Part shown: positions 3,470-34,476 of the stretch, in pieces | Position numbering within the stretch: position 1 is the first letter of the stretch | Layout: every line of letters starts with the position of its first letter | DNA from: Bugula neritina | Taxonomy: Eukaryota; Animalia; Bryozoa | NCBI GenBank assembly: GCA_964035545.1 | Contig: OZ037766.1 | Location: 12,266,722-12,330,721, forward strand | Length of the DNA: 64,000 nucleotides | Direction: 5' to 3' | Notes under the pieces: model-generated | What the model saw: only the letters and a program-made list of their open reading frames with translations | Database searches by the model: none | Told to the model about the DNA's origin: nothing | Position numbers and translations under genes: made by a program

Positions 3470-3780
3470 AAAACTCTAGACTGTTCTGTGCACCCAACTG
3501 GCCACAAAAGCTCCTCAAACTTTTGAAATGAATGAAGAGTTGTCTCCTCCTAATTTTTGTCTAAACCAGTTAAATATCCTGGAATTATTAAAACTACTTT
3601 TGTTTATATATATGAAAAAAAATTGCAGATGGCCATAGATGCATTTTTAAGTTTTATTGTACAGACTCTTGACTGTTTTGTCTACCCAGTTAATCACAAA
3701 AGCTCTTCAAACTTTCGAATAAGTTGTTTTTCCCTAATTTTGTATAAATCGGTTAAATATCTTGAAATTATTCAACCTAA
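3470..3780. repeat. Degenerate tandem duplication, ~190-bp period
   Basis: ACTCTAGACTGTTCTGT...CACAAAAGCTCCTCAAACTTT...CCTAATTTT...AAATATC.TG.AATTATT at ~3473 is repeated at ~3665. Confidence 0.65.
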
Positions 3781-4268
3781 AGATTCTAAATATTGTAACT
3801 AATTTTACCAAAAAAAGTAATAAGGAGCATGAACAGGTTAGTCTAGACTCTAGACTCTAGAGGATATTTTAGGTTTGTACAATTGGGCTTTACCAACAAA
3901 TTTAAATATAACTATATATTGTATAAGCAATGTTTTTAAAATGTTGGTTAAAATGCATAATTTTTATGCTATTTTAACGGTGACTTCTGAGTCAAAATTT
4001 AATTAGTTCAGTTATATTTATGAAGGAAATGCCCTAAAGCTTTGCTATAATTGAAAAAATATCATTTTATAATTATGTTTAATTAGCCACCCATTATAGA
4101 AAAAGATCTGGTGGTGTCTTATTCAAAGATCATGGGCAAGTAAGCTTCTTTTATGTGTGTCATGTGTCACAAAAGACAATAATTTCTTACTAGAAAACTA
4201 GGACAAGCTGTTCTAGAATCTAGACTAATTGAACAAATCAGAAAAACTAACATGCAGGTATCATCCTA

Positions 4269-4575
4269 ACCCCTCATTCACACTTACCGTACCGTAGGCT
4301 GTAACAGCAAAATATCAGCCGGTTTTACAAATTTCTGAGCTTCCTTTACGGCGTTGCGGTACATTAGGATCAAGCACTGCTTGATTCAAAAATGCTGCAG
4401 CGGACTTTCATTGGACAGAAAAACTTGTATGTTAACTCATTGGATATAATTATCTAATGAAGTGTCATAGATCGTACCTAATAGCAGACTTTGAAAACTT
4501 CAGCTCGAACACATTACAAATGGCTGATATTTTATGTTACGACCTACGGCATAATGGTAAGTGTGAATGAGAGGT
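4269..4575. mobile_element. MITE with long imperfect TIRs (PIF/Harbinger-like)
   Basis: CTCATTCACACTTACC...CCGTAGG...AAAATATCAGCC at the left end is mirrored by GGCTGATATTTT...CCTACGG...GGTAAGTGTGAATGAG at the right end. Superfamily assignment is tentative. Confidence 0.7.
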
Positions 4576-4899
4576 CAGTCTGAGCAGGTTAGTTATCACA
4601 GACCTAACACATTTAAGCTAAGGGTTACATAGGCATGTGTTGCCATTATAAAAATATCTCTATCCAATTTTAGGCAACATTTTTGCTATCATATCAGAAA
4701 GTATGAAAGAAGCTTAAATGATAGCTATGAAAATAGGAGTCCAAAAAAAATTTCCTCGCCAAATGCATATAAGCATTGTTATAAGTAGTTGACTTATGAT
4801 AAAAATAACTCACAAAATCATGATAACCGCTTCTAATTCCAATAAAATCGCTTTGTACGATTTTAGAGTCCAGTTCTGGTAGGCTCATAACACTTACTT

Positions 4900-6180
4900 A
4901 AAATGTTAAACCTAACCTTGTTGAACTTAATCTTATGAACCTATATGCGCTCCCATGAATTCTATTAAAAAAGAATTGACTGCAGACTGCTATGCTTCAC
5001 ACATTCTCCTGCATGCCTAAAATGTGCTATTATCTTTGATGAAATCGCAAAACTTCAAAAAGTGAAAGCTGTTCCTATACATTTGATATGCATGCTGATA
5101 CATTCCTTACAGAAATAATTGTAACGGCCCATTCCTAATATTCATGCAAAAGAGACTTTTTCTGTAACTTATCTATAGAAACCAGTTTAAGAATATGAAG
5201 AGATCAAGGCATGCTATGATATGTGGTCATGGAACAGCTGTTGTTGGTTCAAATCAATTATTTCTAGCCAGCTTTTGCAATTTCTTGGCAATTAGCAACA
5301 AGAAAAATTATAGTGCATTTTTGTGAAAAACATTGGGCGAAAAAGGCGATAGAGAAATATTTTCATAGCTATTGGGTTCAAGGAAAACTGCATTTAGCTC
5401 AAATTTTCAAAACATGGCAGAGTTCATAAGAAAATGAAAGTATAGTGTGACGAGACACAAGCCTATAAGCATGATCTTACATGCAAAATATGTCCTGAAG
5501 AATGTTCTCTCAATCAAATGTATAATAATAAAGTCACAATATTTGCAATATCTTACCATTTGAAAATGAATGTTCATTCATAGAACATGATATGGTCACA
5601 TGAGATATTTAGATACCAATTTTGCTGCAAATGAACATGGATATGAGTTGTGTGCAACACTCCCTGGCTTTCATACTCTAGCAGGTTATGATTTCATTAG
5701 CACTTGTATAAAAAAGGAAAGTGCACATTCTACTCCTACCTGAGAAAAACATTCAGAATGTGCTGAAAGCTGTTGTACAGCTTGGAAAGTACTTCAAGCC
5801 ACAACTGCAATAATCTAAATAAAAGGACCTTTGCAAATAAGCATAGATGAAGTTTGATGCGCTGTATTCTGTTTTTCTACACCGATGGCTCAATTAGCAG
5901 GTTTCCCCACAACAAAATGAACTTATGCTGCACACAAAATATTTATCAGACAGCCACTTAAAGAAGGGTAACAAATATTCGATTCCAGAATATTTTGGGT
6001 GAAAATTGTTGAGAATGGCAGCATCACTATAAAATGACTAACTCAAATGTGCCCAAAAATGCATTGAAAAAAACATATCATAATGCTGCTGTAAAACCAA
6101 TACATTCTGATGCGAATGTCAGAATTATCAAATGCAGTGCACTGGTGTATGTCAATGCAAGGATTGTTTAAACAGAAGAT
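4900..6180 (+). mobile_element. Decayed Academ-like DNA transposon fragment (XPG/PIN-like + Cys-rich C-terminus)
   Basis: Frameshifted remnants: TLPGFHTLAGYDFIST..KKGK (~5657-5725), PQQNELMLHTK..YQTA (~5907-5957), PEYFG* (~5985), and CCCKT...CECQ..QMQCTGVCQCKDCLN (~6084-6172). Order and content match the XPG + Cys-finger end of Academ-type proteins as recalled; boundaries approximate. Confidence 0.55.
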
Positions 6181-7946
6181 CCTTTGGAGAAAAATACGAA
6201 AATGGAATTAATAGCAGTAATAATAATGGTAACAAAACTTTATACAATGAAGCTCTACTTTGAAACATTTGTTATATAATTTTCTTCAAACAACAAATTT
6301 TACATTATATGCTTTAATAATTAATCATCCCCATATTCTTGTGATTTTATAATACATTTACAGAATCTTGTTCCTATTTTACAGATATTTAGTAATTACA
6401 GCTAGATCAATAAAAGACTCATGTGGTAGGTGCTCAAAAGATCTCAACATGCATCTTTAATATATAGTTTAAACACTTAATTCTTAGATACATCAGCATA
6501 AAAAACTTTCGATCTCACATAACCAGTTTCTTTTATATACTTATTTTGTTATATGCTTCTGCCAAATGTAATGTGCTATTCATATAGCAAACATGTGTCT
6601 CTAGCTGTTGACAGCTTGGTTTTGAATAGAAGGAGTATTTTGCATTTTATATATAAATAAATAAATAATTTTAAAAAAGAAACAACCAATTTTGGTTTCT
6701 CGCCAAATATTGTTGTTTATAGACAGCTAGTTAATATTTTGCATGATCTCCATTCATTTTTATTACCCATTCAAAAAGATGTATGGTTTGCTTTTTGCAA
6801 TAACTTAAGTTTGAGAAAAGATATAATTCCAGAGTTTGTAAATTCAGAATCCTTACAAAATTCTAATCTAGAAATAACTTTTTTTGAGTGGCCACCTAGT
6901 ACAGTGTAATAAGTTAATTTTTTAAAAACTTTTTGGGAGGTTACTTCTAAAGTCTAGATTTATTGAGCTTTTTTCTTTTAAGAGTATTTTATTAAAATGA
7001 TTGTTGCTACTTTCACACTCAAGACCTCTAGCAATGACTGTTGGTGTGTAAGTAGATAGTGCTGACTTATTGTTTATGGATATACAAACCCTGGCCAAAC
7101 ACCTCATAGTAAATTACTTTAAGTCTTTATGCAATAAAATAAATTTATAAAATTACTGCAATACTACTTTAAAAACTATAAAAATGTAGTATCTTCATGA
7201 TGCGTGTGATTTTATATATTACAGAAAAATAATTTTCATGAAAAAATGTATATACAATTCATTTAATTCCTTACACAGCTGCATGAAATAATTCAAATGG
7301 AGATTTTATCTTGAGAGATAATGTGCAGCAAACGATATTTATAGCGTTTATAAATTATTAAAACATCTTAGATAACAAATGCACAAGAGTTTATATATTT
7401 TAAACTCTTTACTCACATGTTGGTTGTCAGGAGTTCTAATGTTAACAGTTGCTTGGACATCTGCACTCACCCTGGTCATCTTCTCAGGCTCTTTGTGCTG
7501 GCAAACTGTATAAGTTTTAGTCAGGCCCATGTAGATAACAGCTGACACAGAAACAACCAACAGAATGGAGATAACCAGCAAGGAGACTCTAAGGAGCTTT
7601 GACTTGTAGCTTTTCTCAACCATTTGTGAACACAAAATTGAATGAATTTCTACTGTACATACCAATTTAACCTAATTATAAGCTGCTACAATGTGTAAAT
7701 CACAATAATATTTTGACTTTAACAATCTATTTTGAAAAAACTTTGCTATAAAATTATTACTTTGTTTAATTTAGTATTTAAAATTTATCAATAGTAACTT
7801 AGTGCAAGTGAAAATTTTGTTGAATGGTTTTTTAATTAAAATTGATATAAGAATATAAGTGTTAGAGAAAGCTTGCCCTAAAGTCTTCGAATGTATGTTT
7901 GTCTGAGGAGCTCATACTAATCTTTATTTTTATATAAGCTGAGAGT

Positions 7947-11275: not shown

Positions 11276-13668
11276 ATGAACTCCTCAGACAAACAGACAT
11301 TCGAAGACGTTAAAGCAAGCTTTATTTTTATAATTAAATAATCATCAAATAAAATTTTCATTTAATTACTACCAATTATTTTTAATTACTAATTCAAACA
11401 AAGAAATAATTTTTAGCAAAGCTTTTTTAAGCTAAATTATTCAGGCTAAACTTTTAAATTGCAGTTTACAAAATGTGGCAACTTTTGATTAGGTTGAATT
11501 AAAACTTCCCTCAATTTTGTGTTCACAGATGATTGACAAAAGTGACAAGTCAAAGCTGCTGGGAGTCTCTTTACTGGTTATCTCCATTCTGTTGGTTGTT
11601 TCTGTGTCAGCCGTTATCTACATGGGCCTGAATAAAACTCATGCAGTTTGCCAGCAGAAAGAGCCTGAGAAGATGACCAGAGTGAGCGCGGATGTCCAAG
11701 CAACTGTTAACATTAATACGCCTGACAACCAACATGTGAGTAAAGAGTTTAAAATATATAAACTCTTGTGCATTTGTTATCTAAGAATTTTAAGACATCT
11801 TGATATATCGAAAATGCTATATAAATATTGTTTGCAGCACATTATTTTTCAACTTGAAATTTTTATTTGAATTATTTCAACTAATGTCAGTACATCCACA
11901 TGCAGCTGTAAGTAAAACATGTATATATCATATCCATTTGCTACCTAAAATATTTTGGCAAGTTAAAAGCACCAAAAAATCGTTCAGCTTAAATTATTCC
12001 ACAACTTGAAGTCCAATTTTGTTATACAATATAGCTGAACTAAGAGTATTTCAACTCATGCTAGTATAACTATTTTTCATGATTAAGTTATTTGTTTTGT
12101 AATATGAAACCACACACATGTTTTAAGATATTACACTTTTTTTAACTTTTGAAATGATATTGCAGTGTTTTATATTTGTTTTCTCGCATAAAGATTTGAG
12201 TGATTTGCTGTAAATATTTAGCAAAAATTTTGTAAATATAAGTTGCGAGTATGACTGTTGGTACACATACTATACGATTGATGTTACAGGCTTTGAGTAT
12301 AAAATTAGTAGCCATCATTTGAATTAATATTGCCAAAAGAAAACAGTTAGTAAATATTTAGTTAAAAATTGAAGTTCTACAATCCATGAAATCAGGTATA
12401 ATAATGGTACTGAAATGTAAAAATTTTGGTTTTTGATTTTAATTATACATGTATTATGCGGGAGGTTGCTACTAAAATTTTCATATATAATAAAAATATT
12501 AGAAATGAGACTAATGGTTTAAAAAACTTTGTGTATAATATAGGTGAAGGATCAAGTTATGCTGAACAAAGATGAACACGTGGCATACTACCACCGAGCT
12601 GATGGTACTTTTCATGCTGAATTGTTTCAAAAGGTAAATGGCAGTTGATACAGCTCATACATAATATGGTGTGGTGATTATAGTATGCAATATCTTGCCT
12701 GTTATGTATACAAGTGTAAGTAGATATGTGTCTGGTGCAGCTTGTATATCTTGTACGAACATTTCTGAGTGAAAGTAGCTATAGTGCTATTCTCTAAATA
12801 AAATAAAAGCTTGCATCATACATAAATTTGTACACATATATAAATTCTATATATAATAGGCTATATGTGCTTATGTTTGCTTAGATTATGTCAATGCATA
12901 GTTTTTTGTTTTAAAATCTTTTTGAGCATATGTATGCAAGTCGGATTGGAATTGTGGTATAATATAACCATGCAAAGTATTGTAGTTTCCCTATATGTTA
13001 TATATATTTATATGGTCGGCTATGTATGCATGGTTCTGTGAAATTTATGCATACAACCTGTTTAGGGTCTCCGTGTAATCAGAGCTGATAAAGGCATCTG
13101 CTATATTAGTCCTGTTGCTTTTAATGAAACCAACAATGAAGATGTGGTGTCGGAGTTCCTGGACAACTTCGATGACCAGGAACTGGATGAGGAAGACGCA
13201 GAAGTAGATGTTAAAGTACTCGATGAGTTTGTGCAGGATGTCAGTTTTCTTCCTAAACGTGTGCAGAATGAGTGCACCAATGGGTATAAATGGATGATTG
13301 TGATGCCAACAGGAGATTCTGGTAACTATCTTGTTTAGTTACACTTTCTGTTACAGCTCACCAAAAGTCAAGCATATATTTTGCAGCGAGGTTGAAAGTT
13401 TTAGTCCCTTTTGACTCTTTAGTATAATAACTTGTATTTTTCCACACACAAGTTAAATAATCTATATTTACTTTTTATTTTAATTACTGCTAAATGTAGA
13501 AAAAAAATTTTTTTAATAAGATTGCTTTTTGTTCCAGATGCAGCTGTTACTTCAGCTACCCATGGAAGAGTTAAACGCCGAGTCAGTTGCTACAATCGCT
13601 ACTACTGCTACATCATTTTCAGGAGAGCTTATTGTTATGTACGCCGTATATGTACTATTAGAGGATAA
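11276..13668 (+). CDS. BRICHOS-domain precursor of a cationic beta-hairpin antimicrobial-type peptide, paralog B (intact, ~240 aa)
   Basis: Exons 11276-11314 (MNSSDKQTFEDVK, GC donor; in-frame upstream ATG at 11264), 11529-11735 (hydrophobic LLGVSLLVISILLVVSVSAVIYMGL), 12544-12633 (VKDQVMLNKDEHVAYYHRADGTFHAELFQK), 13066-13321 (GLRVIRADKGICYISP...FLPKRVQNECTNGYKWM), 13538-13668 (DAAVTSATHG-RVKR-RVSCYNRYYCYIIFRRAYCYVRRICTIRG*). Phases 0,0,0,1 join without stops; introns 2-4 are GT-AG. CYI and C-x5-W motifs match the BRICHOS cysteine pair (pattern recognition, no HMM run). Confidence 0.85.
13579..13665 (+). other. Predicted mature peptide B, 29 aa, C-x5-C-x8-C-x5-C, 7 Arg, C-terminal Gly
   Basis: Follows the RVKR furin consensus and ends at the stop; no acidic residues; symmetric Cys spacing fits a two-disulfide beta-hairpin. 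Confidence 0.75.
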
Positions 13669-15048
13669 GCCAAAAGTCTTTTAATATTGCTTAAGATTGC
13701 TGTGAGTTCATATGAAATTATGATTTGTGTTTAAAAGTATGGCAAGCTACAAAATTATGATTAGAACTTTCTCTATTTTGAACTTCAGCTTTGTTATAGT
13801 GTGCTTTATCTATTGCAAAAAAAGCATTATGATATTTTCCTGTTTTGCTTATTGGTGAAAATTTAGCCTTATGTTGACTGTACCATTTTTATGCATTTTA
13901 TTTAATAATAAAGTTTTCAAAAAATAACCATAAATAATGGCATCTTTGATATGATTCATTAAAGTAGTCGAAAAAGAATATTTCTCTTACAACATTTTGA
14001 ATTTTCTTTTTAAAAGTTTCTAATAAAATTACTTTTTTCTATCCTGATGGCCTTTATGAATTCATAAATATACTGCATTAGCTATAAAATAGCATTTGGG
14101 ATTTTGAACCTGAGTTCCCAAGTATAAACTTATAATTAATAAACTGGTTTACACATCACCCCCAACAACATTCACCTGCATACTTTAACTGTCACATTTA
14201 CTCATAGAATATCCCTATTTATGATGAAGTGGAATTGTTAGATTATAAGTTGTGGCTGTTTTGATTTATGTACATTGTGTTTACATTGGGTATGTGGCTA
14301 TCTGAATATAAATGACGTGGTGTCATTCCTACCCAACCTCTACTATTTTTCTACTCTAGGGCTATGTAGTGAATGGCTTAAAGCACTATAATAGTAATTT
14401 GAACAACATTTTAGAGTATTTATCTATTTTGCCTAACACAGTCATGCAAAGGATTGAAATTGTCACACTTTGTTACTACATAACTTAGCTGGCCACATCG
14501 AATGTTCCCACTGAACAATAACTCCTTTGATACCAGTTCTTAATTAATTATATTTTGGAAAAATGTAACAGCAATAACTAATAAGTAACTACTTCAGATT
14601 AACTAAACAAGTTCAACTAACGGAGAACACATTACTACTTGTACAAAATTATTATATAACTATGAAATAACTAGCAAAACAATATAAAATGAAAATTGGT
14701 TATAAAAAACTAGATAACTAGAAAGCAACACAAATTAACTGACTCTGTTACTTTTTTGCTAACATATTTTTTGTGCCTGTAAATGTGATAAATGTTATTA
14801 TGTTATTAAGTTATTATGCAGTTTATAGTAATATATTAAACTTTTCACCAGTTTTACTATAATCTTTCGAGTTACACATACACAAATTATTAACTCAATT
14901 ACGATTATTACTTAATTGCATTATTGTTGTTATTTTGTTATTACAGTCTACTATAAATAATATTATGCTATGTCTCTACGCAGCATAAATTATACTCTGC
15001 AAAAAATCTTAAGCTGGCTTAGAGAAGGTCAACTCTACACCCAATTTT

Positions 15049-15360
15049 AGGTATAAATGTCACAGGTAAACATGGCACAGGTAAACATGGCACAAGTAAA
15101 CATTGCACAGGTAAACATGGCACAGGTAAAAATGGCACAGTGAAAATGGCACAGGTAATAATGGCACAGGTGACAATGGCGCAAATTGAAAAGTAGGTAA
15201 ATATGGCATGCTAATGTTAAATTTTTCAACTCCTCAAACTCCAAACCTAAACCCTTCACCCTAAATCCCCAAGCCCCCACCTCAAACCCCAATATTGAAG
15301 ATGGGCCACTTTTACCCACCTTTCCGTTTGTACCATTGTTACCTGTGCCATTTGGACACT
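15049..15360. repeat. 15-bp tandem repeat (CACAGGTAAACATGG) with inverted copies; probable non-autonomous DNA element
   Basis: About 9 units at 15050-15210, a C-rich CCTAAACCC tract, then inverted units GTACCATTGTTACCTGTGCCAT at 15330-15351. Confidence 0.7.
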
Positions 15361-15699
15361 CTGCACCAAGTTCTACTTCGCAAATGTTTGCTTACAATTT
15401 GAGCCTAAAAGACACACGAAACAGCTATAGTGCATGATCAGTATGCTTTATTTGGACGTTATTAACTGAATGTGCTTTGGAGTTTCCCTTAGCTCACCTC
15501 AGCTTTAACAGCCTGCATGAACACCTTGACCTTAGAAATTACCAGGAGTTGCTGTATAACAGAATAATTAGATCACTATACTAGTGGAACAGAACAATAA
15601 CACCAACTAATCTCCCAAATTTAATCGCAGCACTTCAAAAGCATAGTTTTCAAATACAATTAGACATATGTAAATTTTTTAAACACTGTTGAACATGTG

Positions 15700-16800
15700 G
15701 GTCATACCATTAACAATTAGGAATAGGAAATGCCCAACAAATTCTTTTCTGGCGGCTCTCTTTAAACTACCCAGAATCCTAGACTTCCATTGTTGCAATG
15801 GTTGTTTCATTACCAATGTTGTGTGTCTGCTATGATCCCATCATCTCCAATATGTTGGTGTGTCGTCTCCAATTCCGAAGATAAAACTGCTCTGCTGTAT
15901 AATTTCCTCACCAGTGATATTTTGTTTACAAAGTCAGAAAAATTTGAACAAACCTTTACCTAGCTATATAGAACAGCATCACCAAGCCACTAGCCTAGCA
16001 CACTATACCCAAACACAATAATTCATCTTATGGAGTAGGAGTTGTGCTGTCATAAGTGATTGATCAAGAAGAACTCCCATATTGAGTTGGCCAGAAAATC
16101 TTATAAAGTGTGCACCCAATTTCTTGTTGTACTATTAGCTTATTAACTTAACAGGTCCAGACTAGAATTCTACACTTAGAAGCAGTAGTGGAGAAATTGA
16201 GACAGCCTAAGCTATTTAATTCTATTATTAATTTTTGATTTGGAGCTCGAGTTAAAATTTTTGCAAAAATCTAACTTCTTTTGCTAAATTTTTAATCTAG
16301 AACACAGGCTTTTTTCAATTTCTCTATTGATGCAATCAGCTCGAATTTTAAGTCCCCAGCTGTTCACCTGTACATTCATTTGACAGCTACTCCCAAGCAT
16401 TTCATCTGTACCGAAAGCCGTATGTCATAACTATATCGCATCAGATCCATAATCCTACAATTGAAACTCACACATGTAGATTTTCTTTGACTCTTCAGTA
16501 GTAAGGTGTAGCTTTTCTGTACTGATTGTTCAAATTTCTCATGATTTACAGGATAGGCAAATAATTAATAGCAAACAATGCAAGTATTGAAGGGCATCTG
16601 TACTATTGAGGCTGTATGTGCAACTTTTCTTACAGGTCATTACCCACATTTTTCAGTCAGGAATTTGCTAGTTTATGCAATACTTTCTACTTGAAATGTG
16701 TTGCTTCAACCTCCTAGTGACTTTTTTATAACTTTCAAAAGCTCTGTAAACAAGAATTGTGAAAGATGAGCACTTTTAGACAATAGTATTATATCGTCAT
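15700..16800 (-). mobile_element. Possible heavily decayed hAT (BED-finger) transposase remnant in the inverted-repeat spacer
   Basis: Broken minus-strand fragments such as VMTCKKSCTYSLNSTDALQYLH (BED-like), KSTCVSFNCRIM and IIADTQHW; many stops, weak resemblance only. Confidence 0.3.
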
Positions 16801-17936
16801 CAGCATATTACCTAACCATTCCACATCTATTTTTGCAGTGGAAAATACCTGCAGAGGTCTTGGATGGCAACTGATTGTGAAGATATAACTCTCCAGTTTA
16901 CAAACAAACTGCCAAAGAAGACAAGCTATAAACAGGTTATTGACCCATTAGTGTATGCTGCAACTATAGTTCTGGTTCAATATAGATTCCAGCAAATTTT
17001 TATCCAAACAAGAAAATATGATGTTACATTTTTCCAAAATATATTTAATTAAGAACTGGTATCAAAGGGGTTATTGTTCAGTGGGAACATTCGATGTGGC
17101 CAGATAAGTTATGTAGTAACAAAGTGTGACAATTTCAATCCTTTGCATGGCTGTGTTAGGCAAAATAGATAAATACTCTAAAATGTTGTTCAAATTACTA
17201 TTATAGTGCTTTAAGCCATTCACTGCATAGCCCTAGAGTAGAAAAATAGTAGAGGTAAGGTAGGAATGGCACCACCTCATTTATATTCAGATAGCCACAT
17301 ACCCAATGTAAACACAAGGTGTATAAATCACAGCAGCCACAACTTATAAGTTAACAATTCTACTTCAACATAAATAGGAATATTCTATGTGTAAATGTAA
17401 GAGTGAAAGTATACAACAGAACAAATAGGGGATCAAGTGTAAACTCTTTTGTAAATTATAAGTCTATACTTGGGATCTCATGTTAAAAAACCAAAGTGCT
17501 ACTATGGCTAATGCGCAGTACAATTATAAATTCATTTAAAGACAATGAGTTATAATAAATTTATTTTATTATAAACTTTTAAAAGGAAAACTCAATATAA
17601 AGAATTTCATAAAAGAAAAGGTATTTTTCAATCAGTTTAATTTATTATACTACAGATGCCATTATTTATGGTTATATTTTTGACAATTTTATGATTAAAT
17701 AAAATTTGTAAATATTATATAATTAAATTAGGCTAAGTTTTTACCAAAAACAAAAACAGCAAAATATAATGTTTAATAACTCACAAACTTCTTTCAATAG
17801 ATTATATTAAGCAGATTATAACAAAGGTGAAGCTCAAAACAAAGCAATTTGTAATTATAATTATGGTTTGTCATATTTTTCAACGCAAATTTTAATTTTA
17901 TGAAAGCAATGTTTGCATGTAACTTACTGAAAGACA

Positions 17937-20900
17937 TTACACACAAATGCGATATATATAACAATAAATTTCTTCGTCAAAAGGATAGCATCGATAGTAA
18001 TAGTAATAGGAACAAATAACTTGGCGTTTGGCTCTTCCATGTGAAGCTAAAGTGACATCTGCATCTGAAATAAAAACAACTATAGTAACAAATTTTCTTT
18101 TAGATTTAGCTGTGTAATTAAAAAAACCTAATAAATTATATATATCATTTTTGTTTGTTTTTGTGCTTTGCTAATCAGAAAAATCCATCATTAGAAGAGT
18201 GTCAAAAGTATGAAACCAATTTTCATTGTAAGTATGTTTAACTTTTGTGAACTGTAACAGAAAGCTCTAGCTAAGCAAGATAGTTACCAGAATCTCCTGT
18301 TGACATCACAATCATCCATTTATAGCCATTGGTGCACTCATTCTGCACACGTTTAGGAAGGAAACTGACATCCTGCACAAACTCATCGAGTACTTTAACA
18401 TCTACTTCTGCGTCTTCCTCCTCTATTTCCTGGTCACCAAAGTTGTCCAGAAACTCCGACACCACATCTTCGTTGTTGGTTTCATTGAAAGCAACAGGAC
18501 TAATATAGCAGATGCCTTTATCAGCTCTGATTACACGGAGACCCTAAATAATTTGTATATGCATAAATTTCACAGAACCATGCATATACAGCCGACCATA
18601 TAAATATATATAACATATAGTGAAACTACAATACTTTGCATGGTCGTATTATGCCACAATTCTAATCCGACTTGCATACATATGCTCAAAAAGATTTTAA
18701 AGCAAAAAACTATGCATTGACATAATCTAAGCAAACATAAGCACATATACTATATTATGGTAAATTTATATATGTTTACAAATTTATGTATGATGCAAGC
18801 TTTTATTTTATTTATAGAATAGCACTAGCTACTTTCACTCAGAAATATTCGTACATGATACACAAGCTGTAACAGACACATATCTACTTACACTTGTATA
18901 CATAACAGGCAAGATGTTGCATACTATTCACCACACCATATTATATATGAGCTGTATCAACTGCCATTTACCTTTTGAAACAATTCAGCATGAAAAGTAC
19001 CATCAGCTCGGTGGTAGTATGCCACGTGTTCATCTTTGTTCAGCATAACCTGATCCTTCACCTATATTATACACAAAGTCTTGTTAACCATTAGCCCCAT
19101 TTCTAATATTTTTATTATACATAAACTTTTAAAAATAACATTGCTATAAATTCATATGATATGATATGAAAATGTTAAAAACAATATACCTATACATTTC
19201 TAATATTTTTAATATATTATATGAAAATTTTAGTAGCAACCTCCCACATAATACATGTATAATTAAAATAAAACACCTTAAAATTTTTACATTTCCGTAC
19301 CAATATTATACCTGATTTCATAGATTGTAGAATCTCAACTTTCAACTAAATATTTACTAACTTTTTCTTTTGGCAACATTACTTCAAATAATGGCTACTA
19401 ATTTTATACTCAAAGCCTGTAACATCAATCTATTAGTATGTTTACCAACAGTCATACTGGCAACTTATATATAGATATACAGAATTTTTGCTAAATATTT
19501 ACAGCAAATCACTCAAATCTTTATGCAAGAAATCGAATATAAAACACTGCAATATCATTTCAAAAGTTAAAAAAGTGTAATATCTTAAAACATGTGTGTG
19601 GTTTTATATTACAAAACAAATAACTTAATCATAAAAAATAGTTATACTGGCATGAGTTGAAATACTCTTAATTCAGCTATATTGTATAATGAAATTAGAT
19701 TTCAAGTTGTGGAATAATTTAAGCTGAACGATTTTTTGGTGCTTTTAACTTGCTAAAACATTTTAGGTAGCAAATGGACATGATCATATACATGTTTTAC
19801 TTACAGCTGCATGTGGATGTACTGGCATTAGTTAAAATAAGTCAAATAAAAATTTCAGGTTGAAAAATAATGTGCTGCAAACAATGTTTATATACATGTA
19901 GCATTTTCGATTTATCAAAATATCTTTAAATTCTTAGATAACAAATGCACAAGAGTTTATATATTTTAAACTCTTTACTCACATGTTGGTTGTCAGGAGT
20001 TCTAATGTTAACAGTTGCTTGGATATCTGCACTCACTCTGGTCGTCTTCTCAGGTTCTTTGTGCTGGCAAACTGCATGAGTTTTAGTCAGGCCCATGTAG
20101 ATAACAGCTGACACAGAAACAACCAACAGAATGGAGATAACCAGCAAGGAGACTCCTAGCAGCTTTGACTTGTCGCTTTTCTCAACCATCTGTGTAAAGT
20201 CATCACATATGACATAGCATAATTATTTCAAGTTGTAAAAGCAGCATAACGTAATGAATGTACTACAGTTTATATACCAGGTTGTCAGCATTTTAAACTG
20301 TTGAGAACCTGGTTGTGGTGTGAAGATACCATTATTACTGCAGTCTATATGCAGTACAGAGTGTAATCTATTTATGGTACAACCAACTTCCACAATTATT
20401 TCATAGCATACCTTTCCACTCAAATAGGCTATCCGCATCGCTTGATTCCTGCCTACAGCCTACGCAACGACTGCTAGTTGTCAATTCATTAATTAGATAA
20501 CAGCACGCCCTCGCCCATTGGCTGTGGCTTTACGCTTTGGCAGCCCGGATGTTCAGTGCAGACGTTGAACCTACAGCTAGTAGAATAGTAGGCGCTAGCA
20601 ATGCAAGTTCCATCGCATCAATAACAATCAATTTTAATGATATAATTAACAAAATATAATTGAATTTGAATTTGAATTAACTTAAAGAGGCTCAGGTTAG
20701 TTTTGTTTTTCAGTATTTGTAATAGTTTGAAGCTTTCCTTAAGTATTTTTTGATCTATTTCAACTTAATAATAAATATTTGGTTTATTTAACATGTTTAG
20801 AAGTTTAACAAGTTTGGAATGCCAGTGTGGTCAGTGCATGATAGAATTCATGGCTATGTGTTTACTCTATAGTAATATATTTCTCATAAAATTACAAATT

Positions 20901-21677
20901 CTTAAGGCAGGTTTTCCAGTTATTGATCAGTTTGTCACAGGATAGTACCCTAATTTGTAGGTAGCTTAAAGTTTTACTTTTACTCATAACAGTATTTTAC
21001 TGCAACTACTAATTCAAGTCAACTTTGAATACAAGTTTAATCTTTGTTTATGTGATTTATGCACTATTATAACTTGTCTTAACCAATATAATTACTTAAC
21101 TTTGTCTATGGCAATTATCATTTAATGTCATTTTATTATAAACTTTAATATTTTTAGTAAACCTACAATGTCATTTCCTAGAGTCAAACTCACCCTAGCT
21201 AGCCACTAAAAGAAGGCAAGAGGTGACTAATCCAAAATATGTATATATGTTTGAATACTTTACAACGACATAAATAATATTTTGTTGGTTTTATTTTAAA
21301 AACCTATTGTAATTGCATATATCAACCTACTTTTACAGTTTCTTACGGCAGTTGGAATAAGTAAAAATAAAGTTACTAACACCAACACCAGTACAACTCA
21401 TCTAAAGTTAGTGGCAACGCTACAATCTGCGAACACAAAATTGAATGAATTTCTAATGTACATGATAATTCAACCTAATCAAAAGTTGCCACGTTTTGTA
21501 AACTGCAATTTCAAAGTTTGGCCTAAATAATTTAGCTTAAAAAACTTTGCTAAAAATTATTACTTTGTTTGAATCGGTAGTACCATAATTAAATTAAAAC
21601 TTTATTTGATGATTTTCAATTATAAAGAAGAAGCTTGCCTTAACGTCTTCGAATGTGTGTTTGTCTGAAGAGCTCAT
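17937..21677 (-). CDS. BRICHOS-domain peptide precursor, paralog C (coding exons intact, ~239 aa; solo LTR at the exon-2 acceptor)
   Basis: Exons 21677-21639 (MSSSDKHTFEDVK, AAG|gcaagc), 20189-19983, 19061-18972, 18543-18288, 18064-17937 (DADVTLASHG-RAKR-QVICSYYYYYRCYPFDEEIYCYIYRICV*). Exons 1-4 have the same lengths as in B (39, 207, 90, 256 nt) and the same phases. Confidence 0.8.
17940..18023 (-). other. Predicted mature peptide C, 28 aa, C-x7-C-x8-C-x5-C, Tyr-rich, net -1
   Basis: Follows RAKR; QVICSYYYYYRCYPFDEEIYCYIYRICV then TAA at 17939-17937. Confidence 0.7.
20193..21424. mobile_element. Solo LTR (1232 bp, 5-bp TSD, BEL/Pao- or Copia-like)
   Basis: Ends TGTA...TACA, flanked by ATCTG (20188-20192 and 21425-21429); absent from paralogs A and B. 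Confidence 0.8.
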
Positions 21678-21705
21678 ACTAATCTTCATTCTATGAGTTG
21701 AGATT

Positions 21706-21741
21706 GAATGATTTCAACGGAAATAACTGCAGCCTTTTATA
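21706..21741 (-). promoter_or_regulatory. TATA box + initiator, paralog C
   Basis: TATAAAA (plus strand ttttata 21735-21741) and TCATTC (gaatga 21706-21711) upstream of exon 1. Confidence 0.6.
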
Positions 21742-21780
21742 CCAGCCTGTCTCACTTGGGGGTACACAGTTAGTTTAAGG

Positions 21781-22118
21781 CAGGGGTGTCCAACCTTTTT
21801 AGACCAAGGGCCACTGAAAGGGGAATTTTGTGGCGAGGGCCACATTGTAAACTTTAGCTTGTGCTGGGGGCCACAGTCAGTATTTTTTAAATTATTTTAT
21901 TTAAAATTCTTATGAATCATTACACAATAAAGTCCTAATAGTTAATACAGGCTGCATATTTTGTAGCATGTGTATAAATAAGGCATATGAAAGGTGGTTT
22001 TTAACTTTAATTCATGTATATATGTGAAAAATAATTTTAGGTTCAAGTCTTTGAGGGCCACATGAATGTAGGCTGGGGGACCACATCCGGCCCTGGGGCC
22101 GCCTGTTGGACAGCCCTG
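21781..22118. mobile_element. hAT-family MITE (338 bp)
   Basis: TIRs CAGGGGTGTCCAAC / GTTGGACAGCCCTG (1 mismatch) and a perfect 8-bp TSD GTTTAAGG (21773-21780, 22119-22126). Confidence 0.9.
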
Positions 22119-28621: not shown

Positions 28622-29153
28622 CTAAAAATGTGAATAAAATAAAATTACATGACACACATGAAGTTGGCAGCACCAGATGCAGTAGGAGTATTCAGATCAA
28701 AAGAGCAAGCTGTTAGACAATTAAAATGGTAAACATGGCAACTTTGGGAGCAAATTTAAAAAAAGTCACACATAGCTTTTTATATCAGTTAAGCAAGCAT
28801 ACATTTTTACAATGAAGAACATCTGCACTACATTACATGAACACCCGGGATAGCTGCAATCTACAATACACTGTAATTACAACATGCAAGATGCAACTCA
28901 TAAAATCAATAATCGAGACATGCAACTAAACAAGAGAATGCTGGGGATTTCAGCCTAACCTTTTTGCTGCAAATATTGTACATGCGTTGAGAGCACATCT
29001 ACCAACTACAAACCACAAAAGCTACAACAATGGGTTGAAAAAAAGAAACTGAAAAAGGCAAGCGGCGACAAACAAAAATGTCTCAAGCCAAAAGCAACTA
29101 CAGCCTCACAAGCCAACTAACAATTAGACCAGCCACAACATTGACAAAAGTAC

Positions 29154-32100
29154 CTTCAGAATTATGACTTCCAGTAGATGATGCTGGAGATTGACAACGG
29201 CTACTTCTTTGAGTGCGTTTAGCTTCTCTTTCAGCTTCAACATCTGCCATGGTGAAAACTTTTTGACGTGGTTCATATCGATAATCAGACTCATAAAACT
29301 CCTTTAGTCTAGTCGAATGACTAGAGCGGCTTGATGTAGTTGATCGTGTTTCATTATCACTATCCCCATTGTCTTTACTCAGTGCAAATGGGTTTGATGT
29401 TGATGGATAACTTTGGTGAAATGACATGCTCATAGAATCTTGATCTTTTTCTTTTTCGACAACTGCATTGGTATCAAATTCAGTAAAATCTGTGGCTGAC
29501 ACATTATCAGCATTAGAAGAATCATGGAGAGTAAGTGAGTCGGTACTGACCGTCATCGGATCAGATGACTTGGGCATCACTAAGGAGTCAGAAGATTCCG
29601 TCATCAAAGTTTCATCAGCAGTTTCAGATGACACTGAATCAACCATTACCTGATATGAAGACTCCGTCATTGGATCTACAGGAGACTCCTGCAGATAGGG
29701 CTTGTGAATTGCTTCACTGCTAAGTGAATCTATTGATTTTTCCATTACGGAAGGCCGCTCACCACCAATTGAATCAATAGACTTGACCATGACTTCATCT
29801 TGTGTATCACCTTGCAGTGAATTGTTGGAAGTTGAAGCAAATAAATCTTGCTCTCCAATATTACCTAATGAGTCGTTGGATTTGGTCATACATTCACCCT
29901 TGTCTTGTTTCTCATCAACAAGACTATCTGTTGATGTTTCCATTTCTTCACACACTGCCAGGTCCTGTGTAACAACTGGTTCATTCATCAGAATGCACAT
30001 TTTCTCTGGCTTCACTATTTTCTCGTCAGATAGATTTACTTTGTTGTCACTAGGTGAACAGCCATTGTTAGTTGTTGAATCTAGCTTATCAAGTTGATTT
30101 AATGGTTTATCTGCTTCTAGCTGATTGATGCTAGTGTCACGACCCTCATGAGGCTTATCACAATTAAATTCATCTAGTGTACTTGCTAAAGCTACATCCT
30201 CAAAGTTGTGAGTTAAGGCAGAATTAGCTGGAGCTGATGAAGCAACAGGGGAATTGCAACTCAAATTTTCTTGTTTAGCTTCATCTAATTGCGGTTCATA
30301 ACTACTTGACTTAGCATTTAGTTCTTCTAGGTGTTTCACAACTTTGTTTGCCTCCCGTTGAACTTCTTCTGACTCAGCATCCATTTCAAGTGATTCAAAC
30401 TCAAATAATGAACTATTAGAGTTAGCTTTTCTTGAACAATCTAAAATTTTGTAAGTATGCAACTGAGAATGATTATCATTGTCTACAATAGCAGCTTCCA
30501 AATGTTCAAACTCTAGCACTGAAGAGCTAATAGATTCTTGATCTCGGTCAATGGCTTTCCTGACTAGCCGATCACCATAAATTGAAGATCTTGGTGAATC
30601 TTTATTATGTGCAACATGACTTTCCAATTGCTCAAACTCAGCTAAAGATGAAGAGACAGATATGGCATCTGCATCGCGGATGTTTGAAAATTTTTGAATG
30701 ACTACAATTTCCGATGATGGCGTACTCACAGCTGATCTCTGGGGGCTATCAATCCGAGGAGTTGTGGGTTCTTGAACTAAAGCAGATTGCGAGTCGGTTA
30801 ATGGCAATGAGATTATTGGTAATTCAGGACCACTAATGCATGTAACATCAGACGTTATAGATGAAGTCATAGAGGCAATCTCATGAAGTCGATCCTCTGA
30901 CTCTTCAACTAATCCACCAGGGGCTATAACAGTATTATAGCTATCAACACTAGATATATCAGCATCGTCGTCAAAGCTGTTATCTTCAAAAGAGTCAATG
31001 GCAGAAGCCTGTTGAGACTGATCAACATAAGAGTTTTGAGGACTATTATTGGAACACATTTCTTCAAGGATTGTATCTACAAATCCTCGATTATCTTCTT
31101 GCTCAGAACTAATAGAACCTTCACTTTCAGATAACTCTTCAACTGCTGACAGCTGCCGATGCTGGTACAAAGAAGGTTCTTCTACATCAAGGATGGTCAC
31201 TTCATCCAACTCCGAAGAATCCTCGGTTAACAAGTTGTCATAAATACTGTTACTAGAACCAGAGTTACTACCCTCAGCAGGTGGAGACACTTCTTGACGA
31301 TAAAACTTGATGGAATCTGAAATGGCTTGAGAAACAATTTGAGAAACTAGATTGCTTTCATTCAGTTCATTTGTGCCATGACTAGAAGTAAAGTCTGTAG
31401 TAGCCTCAAAACTAACACTTCCAGGCACGTTGAAATTGTTTTCTTCAGAAGAAATATTTGTACTGAGGTCTTCATGAACTGGGTCAACACTGCTTGTTGT
31501 GCATGCTGTATCATTACTAGCTGGAGTGTTACCATCATTAGTAAACCTTACTGAAAGCTCCATTTCATCAATGGGACTTTTATCTAGCTCACTTGGATCA
31601 TATGTGAAAGGTTTTAAAGCTGTTGAACTTGCAGGTACATTGAAATCGTTTTCTTCAGAAGGAGTATTTGTACCGAGGTCTCCATGAAGTAGGTCAACAC
31701 TGCTTGTTGTGCGTGCAGTATTCTCACTGGCTGGAGCATTACCACCATCAGTAAACCTTACTGAAAGGCCTGCTTTATCAATTGGACTTATATCTAGTTC
31801 ACTTGGATCATATGTGATAGAAGGGTTTGAAGCTGTTGAACTTGCAGGTACGTTGAAATCGTTTTCTTCAGATGAAATATTCGTACCAAGGCCTTCATGA
31901 ACTGGGTCAATACTGCTTGTTGTGTGTGCAGAATTTTCACTGGCTGGAGCATTACCATCATCAGTAAACCTTACTGAAAGGCTTGCTTTATCAATGGGAC
32001 TTTTATCTAGTTCACTTGGATCATATGTGAAAGAAGGTTTTGGAGCTGTTGAAATATGACCTAGACCAAAATCAATTATGCTAGACAGTGGATCAACTGT

Positions 32101-33941
32101 TGATGGCAGGTGCACTGTTTCTACCCTACTAACTTCACTACTGGCATCGCCAATATTCTGAGAAAAGCTGTCAGAAAATACTTCATCTGAAACACTAGTT
32201 GAAGCAGTAGGCACAGAACTATCGCTAGAATCATGTGTGCTCTTACTGCTTGGCAATATGTCAGTCAACTCTCCAGTTTCCAAGACATAGCACGCGCCTA
32301 TCACACTAGTTTCTGCTGAAGAACATGGAGTTTCATTCAACTCATCCGTAACCGTTTTTGAACTTACGAAGGATGTTTCCAAAACATCACCAGCATCATC
32401 ACTTTCTACATCTGAAAAACTTAGCCTGCGTTCTCCTTCGGAAGAGATACCGGAAAAGCCCCCAAAAGACAATCGACCATGTGCTGAATTAAAACTAGGG
32501 CACAAAGTGGCATCACTAGGTGGTAACCCTGCAGCTTGTTTTACATCTGATGAAATATCCTTTTCAGAATTACACAGCGTATCACAGCCACCACCACAAT
32601 CTTTAGCATCTTCACCAGAACTTCCAAAATCATACGAGGTGCCACTATCTGTCATTATTTGTGGAGATGGAAAAATATCCTGTTTTTCAGTTATACTAGA
32701 ATCTTCTCCGGATGAAAGCTCTTGATCTGATAACATGACTTTGTCAGATGCAGTTTCTGCATCTAAATTAGCAGCACCTAATGACTCCTTTTCTCCACAA
32801 GTCAGCAAAGGATCAGCTGAAGGTGCTGAAATTTCGGCCTGCTTAGCAACAATGCCATCTGTAGAACTACTTCTTGATTGGGAAATGCTTTCTCCAACTT
32901 TAAACACTTCGTTTGAATTAGAATGTTGCTCCTCGTTTGATGCAAGTTCAAAATCTTCGTTTGCGGCTTGAGAGTGTATACTCATCAATGCATCATTAAC
33001 TAGACTTCTAGCTAGTTCATAGATGCTGTTGTCGGCGCTGGTAGGAGATTCAACAGGTAATCTATCTTCTTTAGAAGATATAGCTGCAGAAGAATTATCA
33101 TCAGGTAATAATATATCTCCATCAGCTTCAGAATTGCTTTCTATAGAACTTGAACACTCTAAGTGATGAGCCTTTTCATTTTTGTGTGAGATATCTTCAG
33201 ATGAGGACATCCCATCTGCTACCATACTACGACTAAAATCTTCTGAACCTGGCAAGTCACCCAAATCTTCTAACGGCTTTAGTTTTTCTGCATCGTGAGT
33301 ACTGTCCTCAGTACAATCATCAGTTTGCATGTCCTCATTTTCTTTGTCCGGCAAGAAAGTATTATCCTTAGCTAGACTGGACTCACCACTAACTTGATCA
33401 TCAGATAAAAATGAATCAATTTTTTCAGCAGCACGCAAATTTTCATAAAGTTGATCTAGTGAACTGTTTTTGTCATCAGAAAGAGTAGGTGTGAGTGATT
33501 TATCATCTTGGCTTAAATCCAAAAGCTCACTATGCTTTCCAAGTGATGGATTATCGACATCACCCTCTAATTTACCAGATTGTTCATTTTCTAACGAGCC
33601 TTGCACTTTATCCATTAGTTTTCCAATATAATTGTCAGCTTGATCATCAATAATGTTGAAATCTGGAATTTCTGAATCTTTGTCAACATCCTCAATTGAA
33701 TATATTGTTGATGGCCTAGATAAGTCATCGTATGAGCGATAGGTCTGTGCTGAGTCGGAGCTATTGCTAGTAGTTTTAGGTAATTTTCCAATACAAGCTC
33801 CTTGGACATCACAAACTGTTTTAGGAACTATTAAATCATGGTCAATGACGTCATGTTCGTTCGGACTAGCAGACAAAGTGTGATCACCAGAGGAGCTCAG
33901 CAATGTGCCACCACCAACCTCACAAGCATCAACACCAATAC
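29154..33941 (-). CDS. 4788-nt exon of the giant gene; acidic Ser-rich region with UNC-44L-like SSLxEFExLE and MxxSxDSL repeats
   Basis: Within ORF 29098..33996; acceptor atgcag|GT at 33941, donor GAAG|gtactt at 29154; length divisible by 3. Confidence 0.85.
31420..32045 (-). repeat. Three tandem ~70-aa coding repeats (FTYDPSELDKSPID..LSVRFT.DGN.PAS)
   Basis: Period ~210-213 nt inside the 4.8-kb exon. Confidence 0.85.
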
Positions 33942-34476
33942 CTGCATAGGTGAAAATATCCATCAATTTCCAGATAAAGAAACTAGTGAAACACAAATTG
34001 CAAAAAAATAAGATGGCTTCAGCATCAACCGCTAAAACTTATTTTACCCCAAATTATTGCAAAAAACTAAAGATTCTATCAACCACATGAGAATAAACTT
34101 GAGAATTACACCTTTTTAGACAGGTTTTCACCAATTTAAAACTCGCTTAATTTTTTCAATTGCTGATAACACAGAGTTCACAGTTATCAAGTTTTGTCAG
34201 TATTGCAAAGGTCAAAATTTAATTAAATTATTTAATTTGGGAATATATACACTATACAAAAATGGTCTGTAGATTTCCAGATTAAAACTTTACCAAGACC
34301 TAAACGAGGCAATTGTAATTTTTAAGAACAGAAATCAAACAACATAACCTTGATAATAATTTATAAAAACAAAAATGAATTATATTATACAATATTTAAT
34401 TCACATTAGCTTGATTGCATTACTTGATCTACCACATTGACTATCAACTGTCACAGGATCACAACAAAAAAATTAC

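Follow-up and report, generated by a model that had tools for sequence, protein, structure and literature searches.

A tyrosine-rich, non-cationic hairpin cargo predicted for a BRICHOS-like precursor gene of the bryozoan Bugula neritina

BRICHOS-linked hairpin peptides have been described from annelids, in which they are cationic (PMC6265681, PMC13001179, PMC10745061). A cluster of five paralogous genes (A to E), lying within 33 kb of one contig (C2) of the bryozoan Bugula neritina, raises the question of what kind of peptide a carrier of this sort delivers when the released part is tyrosine-rich and weakly anionic. The window analysed here, the whole stretch of 64,000 nucleotides from contig OZ037766.1 (positions 12,266,722 to 12,330,721), contains gene C, the predicted cargo of which, peptide C, has a net charge of -1. 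The picture that we favour, and to which we give an even chance, is of a BRICHOS-like carrier with a four-cysteine hairpin as its cargo, which is a member of a diversifying repertoire rather than a degenerate antimicrobial peptide (AMP).

Peptide C is a genuine encoded 28-residue C-terminal cargo, as predicted from gene structure. On the minus strand, positions 17937-18023 comprise exactly 28 codons and a TAA stop, and translation of 17931-18068 reveals an upstream frame that ends in ...SHGRAKR and continues directly into QVICSYYYYYRCYPFDEEIYCYIYRICV and the stop. The conserved acceptor (tttcag/AT), the phase-1 junction shared with the paralogues, the same R-x-K-R end of the propiece and the retained cysteine framework argue that this is more than a chance open reading frame (ORF). 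The remaining frames at 17850-18150, on either strand, contain only short ORFs without support. The 41-residue exon 5 has no upstream in-frame ATG, GTG or TTG, and would thus be missed by an ORF caller. Across the 216-Mb genome the peptide C exon is single copy; only genes B and E have a related cargo exon there (51% identity). In agreement with the original prediction, nine of its 28 residues are tyrosines (32%), together with four cysteines, one phenylalanine, two arginines and three acidic residues (Asp/Glu). The peptide begins with a glutamine directly after the basic site (G-R-A-K-R/Q), which, as a matter of general chemistry, could cyclise once RAKR is cut; it has no C-terminal glycine, hence no amidation signal, whereas peptide B has a terminal glycine.

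The proposal of a charge-reversed pair, with peptide C as a sibling to B on a common scaffold, is borne out by alignment. The two peptides follow the same carrier and align with one two-codon gap, 13 of the 26 aligned positions being equal (V2, the four cysteines, five tyrosines and the RIC motif), whereas the inner-cysteine loop, eight residues long in both, is wholly replaced, with PFDEEI in C and IIFRRA in B. Residue counts give net -1 for C versus +7 for B, which has seven arginines and no acidic residue. The cysteines of C follow the pattern C-x7-C-x8-C-x5-C, those of B and E C-x5-C-x8-C-x5-C and those of A C-x5-C-x8-C..., such that the longer first arm is most simply a C-specific insertion. 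It coincides with a perfect TACTAT repeat found by Tandem Repeats Finder, as a suggested two-codon expansion within a hexamer repeat would require; the array encodes the tyrosine run and is slippage-prone but tiny. Cross-strand partners in a regular hairpin have position numbers with a fixed sum. In B both cysteine pairs are in register, the paired positions summing to 29 (4 + 25 and 10 + 19). In C the inner pair sums to 33 (12 + 21) and the outer pair to 31 (4 + 27), which would leave the outer C4/C27 pair two residues out of register as a consequence of the hexamer insertion.

When the 41 residues of exon 5 were modelled with AlphaFold2, peptide residues 6-15 and 18-27 were predicted as strands, connected by a turn at D16-E17. 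One face of the modelled hairpin would present Y6, Y8, Y10, C12 and P14 opposite I19, C21, I23, R25 and C27, and the other Y7, Y9, R11, Y13 and F15 opposite E18, Y20, Y22, Y24 and I26. The model thus lacks the cationic, amphipathic character of the arenicin type: the net charge is -1, both faces are composed of Tyr, Ile and Cys with one arginine each, and the acidic residues lie at the turn. Composition and the predicted aromatic/aliphatic faces are therefore in accord with the earlier view that a cationic lytic AMP is unlikely. A separate possibility, that peptide C is a copy of the cargo of gene D, was ruled out by a different framework and zero DNA similarity.

On the basis of sequence, gene C appears to be a five-exon minus-strand gene with usable splice sites, the boundaries and phases of which are canonical except for the GC donor of exon 1 (Table 1). 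Its exon 1-exon 2 junction is also used by the GenBank B. neritina models P0030 and P0031, and the exon 2-3-4 junctions by model P0027, all three being without the cargo exon. A furin-substrate motif (R-x-K/R-R) occurs directly before the part predicted to be released, as RAKR in C; the corresponding sites are RAKR in A, RVKR in B, D and E, and REKR or KVKR in proteins of the cheilostome Watersipora subatra, the only other bryozoan with full-length models, so that every Bugula and Watersipora cargo is preceded by R-x-K/R-R or K-x-K-R. An Rfam scan of 13000-22000 found nothing, and a profile search of a 5.8-billion protein set returned only Watersipora proteins and partial GenBank B. neritina models, with no transcript-derived precursor of any Bugula paralogue.

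The carrier is probably BRICHOS-like in the sense of superfamily membership. With exon 4 queried alone, the Pfam BRICHOS profile (PF04089) matched with an E value of 0.0063 and 17.2 bits over profile positions 22-86 of 91, compared with a gathering score of 25 bits; exons were queried singly, and positions 1-21 would fall in exon 3. BRICHOS was the only recurring Pfam family; its matches, to five of the 15 family members and with a best E value of 4.6e-4, were always in register. Of the 30 named ESM Atlas clusters closest to the full-length Watersipora homologue P0006, 21 belong to BRICHOS families (chondromodulin, tenomodulin and ITM2, plus one from molluscs). The two domain cysteines, in the GICYIS and NECTNGY motifs, are conserved in every Bugula copy as well as in Watersipora and metagenomic relatives, and are predicted to form a disulfide. 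Candidates for the aspartate that is strictly conserved in the BRICHOS first strand occur in exon 3 (LNKDEHVAYY) and in P0006 (ISYDQNSRVAYY), but at positions offset by two columns, and P0003, another Watersipora homologue, has no Asp there, so that the assignment is ambiguous. In the exon 2 product, KSKLLG leads into a hydrophobic segment of ~23 residues, which aligns to the part of the Watersipora model that is helical at residues 17-49, and exon 4 has a net charge of -12. The predicted precursor thus starts with a short cytosolic stub and a type II anchor, which a linker joins to an acidic lumenal domain, and ends in a basic site and a C terminus prone to beta structure, an architecture that fits the general BRICHOS proprotein plan (PMC10182729). 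The BRICHOS superfamily as a whole carries non-cationic, beta-prone C termini (PMC10182729). The genome also has two more distant paralogues that are BRICHOS-like (L006 and L007), the matched exon of which gave no Pfam match.

Comparison with Watersipora and with further Bugula sequences places the charge of peptide C in context. Queried with exon 4, a set of 1.84 billion representative proteins returned only 14 relatives, the full-length ones being RefSeq models of W. subatra. Three of these, XP_067942708 (P0003), XP_067942194 (P0015) and XP_067947259 (P0006), are true carrier homologues (32-45% identity to the Bugula exons), with the same architecture, a basic site and a four-cysteine cargo rich in Tyr, Trp or Phe; unlike peptide C, their cargo is 46-56 residues long, has other cysteine spacings and is without alignable similarity to it. 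After REKR or KVKR, the Watersipora cargo always has four cysteines; its aromatic content is 19-33% and its net charge ranges from 0 to -12. Group 1 (GLYYWHYHKYWWYC...) has 7-12 Tyr and three Trp in 46 residues (net 0 to -9), and group 2 is Phe/Tyr-rich (net -12); no cationic cargo was present among the Watersipora proteins found. Since the Watersipora cargoes are all neutral to anionic and that of gene D is anionic, the tyrosine-rich, non-cationic type represented by C would be typical of the family and the cationic B/E type in the minority. The 'charge-reversed' framing therefore holds with respect to B, but C is not the odd one out. One Watersipora protein (P0018, XP_067947260, 481 residues) contains two full precursor units head to tail, each with an anchor, a BRICHOS-like domain, KVKR and cargo; it must represent read-through of tandem genes or else a genuine double-BRICHOS protein, a kind mentioned in PMC10182729.

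D-type cargo exons, unannotated in GenBank B. neritina, were located at L010:5285-5413 and L011:7230-7355 (contigs VXIV02002110 and VXIV02002268). They share the cysteine framework C-x6-C-x7-C-x3-C, the L010 cargo being anionic (GSTLCLDLVFECRIVSGQPYCEYVCLSL, net -2) and that of L011 cationic (GTRCRRFVMQCSTVAGQQSCQLVCRHA, net +4). Judged from the encoded peptides, charge switching on a fixed scaffold has occurred at least twice (B/E versus C, and L011 versus D and L010). The carrier exons of both L010 and L011 contain frameshifts; as these are draft contigs, assembly errors are possible. Both sequences are only 86-87% identical to the cluster (C2:12252000-12290000) over kilobases, introns included, and the genome studied here would appear to represent a lineage other than GenBank B. 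neritina or a cryptic species within the B. neritina complex, or else a different bugulid.

The evolution of the cargo cassette bears on whether peptide C has been maintained. From the exon 2 ATG to ~45 nucleotides (nt) inside intron 4, C and B are 90-98% identical in exons and introns; past that point the identity in intron 4 falls to 43-65%, marking the start of an island of divergence that takes in the propiece, mature peptide and 3' flank (Table 1). The carrier has thus been homogenised or recently copied, and the cargo cassette is much older; it remains distinct despite flanks that are 93-98% identical to B. The proportions of synonymous and nonsynonymous differences (pS and pN) between C and B are 0.67 and 0.35, respectively, in the mature region and 0.126 and 0.022 in exon 4, the synonymous excess in the mature region being nominally significant (Fisher p = 0.04). 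Of the 28 codons of peptide C, 13 (nine Tyr and four Cys) are one step from a stop and none has mutated to one. In neutral simulations, an open frame with the four cysteines and KR survived with P = 0.002-0.01 at a divergence (d) of 0.2-0.3 per site, a low survival which argues that the cassette has been constrained for most of its history. The carrier exons of gene C have three synonymous and three conservative unique changes and are no worse than those of B, D and E. These results point to past constraint on the peptide C cassette, with recent loss of function being possible. The idea that C is a fast-evolved copy of B was ruled out, because intron 4 and the 3' flank have diverged as well.

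Several observations weigh against the picture that we favour. With respect to the carrier, none of the 15 family members attains the Pfam BRICHOS threshold; the AlphaFold2 model of the Watersipora P0003 carrier, built from 15 sequences, is poor (mean predicted local distance difference test score, pLDDT, of 50.3) and gave no Foldseek match in the PDB at E <=0.001, the expected fold being a central beta-sheet with two flanking helices (PDB 2yad); and a carrier profile search of PDB sequences found no solved structure. The hairpin model was built from two sequences and, although the best model reaches a pLDDT of 71.5 overall, and of 86-89 within the hairpin, the remaining four of the five scored 51-58. 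The mature region (59% identity to B) and the intron (61%) are equally diverged, so that the argument for constraint rests on the frame, the cysteines and the KR site, not on rate. At d = 0.05, as in the case of a recent death, an intact exon 5 survived neutrally with a probability of ~0.28-0.34. In gene C, a long terminal repeat (LTR)-like insert, from a family with more than 40 dispersed genomic copies (82-91% identity, some paired ~3.2 kb apart) in a pattern consistent with a solo LTR, coincides precisely with the exon 2 acceptor, at CAG/AT. The original acceptor, now a decoy upstream, is the stronger, its polypyrimidine tract being intact, and its use would read IVALPLTLDELYWCWC and a stop into the insert, truncating the protein; the target-site duplication recreates cag/ATG at the true exon 2, behind a weaker polypyrimidine tract. 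Finally, gene A has the look of a pseudogene. Its BRICHOS exon has lost 13 nt (junction ~2617/2618), and with them DKGIC, the first conserved cysteine and the frame, its exon 2 acceptor has changed from AG to AA (~7624) and its exon 1 ATG to ATA, and yet its five-cysteine cargo exon (~2029-2185, ETYCITIYICYKVAGTTVCHPICKIVFKLHNIVMCKL) remains open; an open cargo ORF alone is therefore no proof of a live gene.

The alternatives considered here overlap in part with the favoured picture. Gene C might be a recently silenced or dying copy, in which the insert diverts splicing and the cargo exon is intact for lack of time to decay; we regard this as doubtful, though deserving of serious consideration. 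The insert, at 9-10% divergence from its nearest genomic copies, is not brand new, which adds to the case made by its position, the intact decoy, the open cargo exon of gene A and the neutral survival at low divergence. Against this, the target-site duplication rebuilds an AG right before the exon 2 ATG, the TATA-like box, exon 1 ORF and GC donor of gene C are intact, there is no lesion in any of its exons, the unique carrier changes are few and conservative, and none of its many stop-prone cargo codons has been lost.

Peptide C might alternatively be a target-specific effector (an anionic antimicrobial, a deterrent toxin or a signalling ligand) within a conotoxin-like repertoire, the hypervariable cargo of which is under diversifying selection. 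The constant carrier (90-98%) alongside wholly different cargo frameworks in the paralogues would fit such a role, as would a mature region more diverged than the 3' flank (53-59% versus 70-83% identity) and co-orthologue cargo in the GenBank lineage that differs at about a third or more of positions. However, the ratio of nonsynonymous to synonymous change over the mature region is below 1, and intron 4 is equally diverged, such that an older origin of the cassette accounts for the divergence without positive selection. We consider this explanation unlikely.

It is more improbable still that peptide C is a charge-complementary partner of B and E, acting as an antidote, storage partner or synergist in mixed hairpin assemblies. 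Genes C and B are adjacent in convergent orientation, at a distance of 4.3 kb, and the anionic D and cationic E are tandem neighbours; charge has been switched twice on one scaffold (+7 in B/E versus -1 in C, and +4 in L011 versus -2 in D and L010); and the Tyr/Cys backbone positions common to C and B would pair in a mixed sheet. Yet a net charge of -1 is too small to neutralise +7, C has its acidic residues at the turn alone, and the Watersipora proteins found have anionic and neutral cargo with no cationic partner. A related and equally speculative notion, to which we attach little weight, is that neighbouring genes deliver matched cationic and anionic hairpins (B/E with C, with the D type in both states) that co-assemble into a two-component material or weapon. 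At the same low likelihood, this might take the form of a charge-patterned amyloid-like trap, a coacervate, a cement or a toxin with its antidote, and the chaperone domain would then hold each half inert until furin cleavage.

A structural or adhesive role, with tyrosines converted to 3,4-dihydroxyphenylalanine (DOPA) or dityrosine cross-links in cuticle or larval cement, or with chitin or mineral binding, is improbable to a similar degree, because, although Bugula and Watersipora both build chitin-protein, partly calcified walls, tyrosine makes up about a third of C, one Watersipora cargo family (P0003, P0015, P0022 and P0023) is 24-33% aromatic and the cargo of P0023, P0006 and P0019 is strongly acidic (-9 to -12), peptide C is a single 28-residue unit with two predicted disulfides, without repeats or the Lys/Gly-rich context of known DOPA adhesives, and our literature search found no link of BRICHOS to invertebrate skeletal matrices or biomineralisation.

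Returning to the reading of C as one cargo in a diversifying repertoire, a plausible sequence of events can be proposed. The precursor would enter the secretory pathway as a type II membrane protein, with carrier and cargo lumenal. By analogy with Bri2 and Bri23 (PMC11168071), the BRICHOS-like domain may hold the beta-prone cargo as an intramolecular client. A furin-like convertase would then cut after RAKR, freeing the 28-residue hairpin, possibly with an N-terminal pyroglutamate. In the model, this hairpin would have an acidic tip (D16-E17-E18), Tyr and Ile on both faces and C12-C21 in register. The freed peptide would most probably self-associate, or bind a partner surface, via its stacked aromatic faces, and would not be expected to lyse anionic bacterial membranes. 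We attach much less weight to any particular end use than to this overall picture.

Features of gene C and its paralogues are collected in Table 1. Between paralogues the carriers are 90-98% identical, whereas the cargo frameworks are wholly different. Two exon 4 variants segregate two versus two: DNFGDQEIEEED (window 18400-18450) is common to the carriers of anionic cargo, C and D, and DNFDDQELDEED (window 13170-13210) to those of cationic cargo, B and E; given gene conversion, this may reflect history rather than co-adaptation. A short tandem array with CAMFT and HLCH motifs in two frames, probably a minisatellite, lies at 15047-15319 (minus strand), at the centre of the inverted B/C duplication. 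Elsewhere in the window, an unbroken ORF of 7,400 codons (41796-63998, minus strand) encodes acidic Pro/Glu/Asp/Gln-rich repeats (EEPDQTVAEEPDQ...) in what is a giant repetitive exon, with a GC content of 52% versus ~30% in the remaining window. A further ORF of 1,632 codons (29098-33996, minus strand), rich in Ser, Asp and Glu and repeating internally about three times (...FTYDPSELDKSPIDKASLSVRFTDDGNAPASEN...), probably belongs to an adjacent gene as one large exon.

Table 1. Positions and properties of features of gene C, and the five paralogues with their cargo; identities are for C versus B.
Feature	Positions	Strand	Description	Basis
TATA-like box	21727-21743	-	GGTATAAAAGGCTGCAG, upstream of exon 1; kept in all five paralogues	Consensus match; alignment
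Exon 1, coding part	21639-21689	-	MKISMSSSDKHTFEDVK, then GC donor AAG/GCAAGC	Alignment
Original exon 2 acceptor, now decoy	21425-21440	-	ttttgtgttcgcag/AT; ends in upstream CAGAT (5-bp target-site duplication)	Alignment
LTR-like insert	20193-21424	-	1,232 bp; TG...CA ends; CAGAT duplicated on both sides; missing from A, B, D and E	Alignment
Exon 2	19983-20189	-	MVEKSDKSK, hydrophobic type II membrane anchor and linker; 69 codons; phase 0	Aligns with Watersipora N termini
Exon 3	18972-19061	-	30 codons; start of BRICHOS-like domain (VKDQVMLNKDEHVAYYHRADGTFHAELFQK)	Canonical ag/.../gt boundaries
Exon 4	18288-18543	-	BRICHOS-like core; Cys motifs GICYIS and NECTNGY; N-glycosylation motif NET; strongly acidic stretch; phase 1 end	Pfam
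Intron 4	18065-18287	-		Acceptor tttcag/AT at 18065/18064
Exon 5 propiece	18024-18064	-	(D)ADVTLASHGRAKR, ending in furin-type R-A-K-R; exon 5 = 18064-17937; identity 77-83%	Translation
Mature peptide C	17940-18023	-	QVICSYYYYYRCYPFDEEIYCYIYRICV; 28 residues; identity 53-59%	Exon 5; translation
Hexamer repeat	17994-18009	-	TACTAT (coding strand), perfect; 2.7 copies; score 32	Tandem Repeats Finder
Stop codon	17937-17939	-	TAA, directly after peptide C	
First polyadenylation-like hexamer	17891-17896	-	ATTAAA, 41 nt past stop	Pattern match
3' flank			Identity 70-83%	
Aligned segment	17305-17065		Identity 93-98%	
Gene A	2029-7930	-	5-Cys cargo, net +3	
Gene B	13579-13665 (peptide B)	+	Cargo net +7	
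Gene C		-	Cargo net -1	
Gene D		-	Cargo GYTLCLEMVFECHTVSGQQYCEFVCIRW, net -2	
Gene E		-	Cargo identical to B (net +7)	

To our knowledge, the mining of BRICHOS-linked peptides for new antibiotics has so far been confined to marine worms and to cationic cargo. The locus described here presents a BRICHOS-like carrier logic in a second phylum, with cargo on one scaffold shifted from +7 to -1 while the Cys/Tyr backbone is kept, and aromatic, non-cationic cargo appears to be the commoner type in bryozoans. The frequency of non-cationic cargo, together with the charge shift on one scaffold, argues for the control of beta-aggregation, and not antimicrobial charge, as what primarily ties BRICHOS to its cargo. 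Peptides B and C form a natural matched pair for studying the effects of charge on folding, chaperone dependence, self-assembly and activity. The value of the locus is limited by the insertion in gene C, and expression and activity are at present predictions from sequence.

With regard to known systems, the literature search tied BRICHOS to bryozoans by incidental co-mention only. Chondromodulin-1 and tenomodulin resemble the predicted product of gene C in their type II anchor, BRICHOS domain, furin-type cleavage and Cys-rich hydrophobic C-terminal domain, which is released as the active part; unlike peptide C, their cargo has ~60 residues and eight cysteines, is conserved and acts on endothelial cells, and the likeness is by language-model features alone. 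ITM2B/Bri2 with Bri23 (PMC11168071, PMC10182729) likewise has a type II topology, a lumenal BRICHOS domain and a furin-type site before the cargo, and Bri23 is, as is predicted for C, a disulfide-closed, hairpin-forming, non-cationic C-terminal peptide of ~23-28 residues. Bri23 is BRICHOS's own client and has been modelled as a beta-hairpin docked on the domain (PMC11168071). It differs, however, in having one disulfide and in not being Tyr-rich, and the ITM2 genes are single-copy and conserved, not a cluster with hypervariable cargo; the likeness is at the level of BRICHOS. The annelid BRICHOS AMP precursors (arenicins, alvinellacin, capitellacin and HfBRI-25; PMC6265681, PMC13001179, PMC10745061) have, as is predicted for gene C, an anchor, an acidic BRICHOS proregion, a basic site and a short, disulfide-stapled beta-hairpin at the C terminus, with a carrier more conserved than its cargo; no sequence relation to them was detectable among the 14 matches of the representative search. 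Peptide C differs in coming from Bryozoa, in its net charge of -1, its non-amphipathic character and its 32% Tyr, and in its outer cysteine pair, predicted to be out of register. Given its charge, lack of amphipathicity and tyrosine content, the cationic membrane-lytic logic of the annelid AMPs would not apply to it. The known kind is thus that of the BRICHOS-linked hairpin peptides, annelid and cationic, to which peptide C adds a bryozoan, non-cationic variant.

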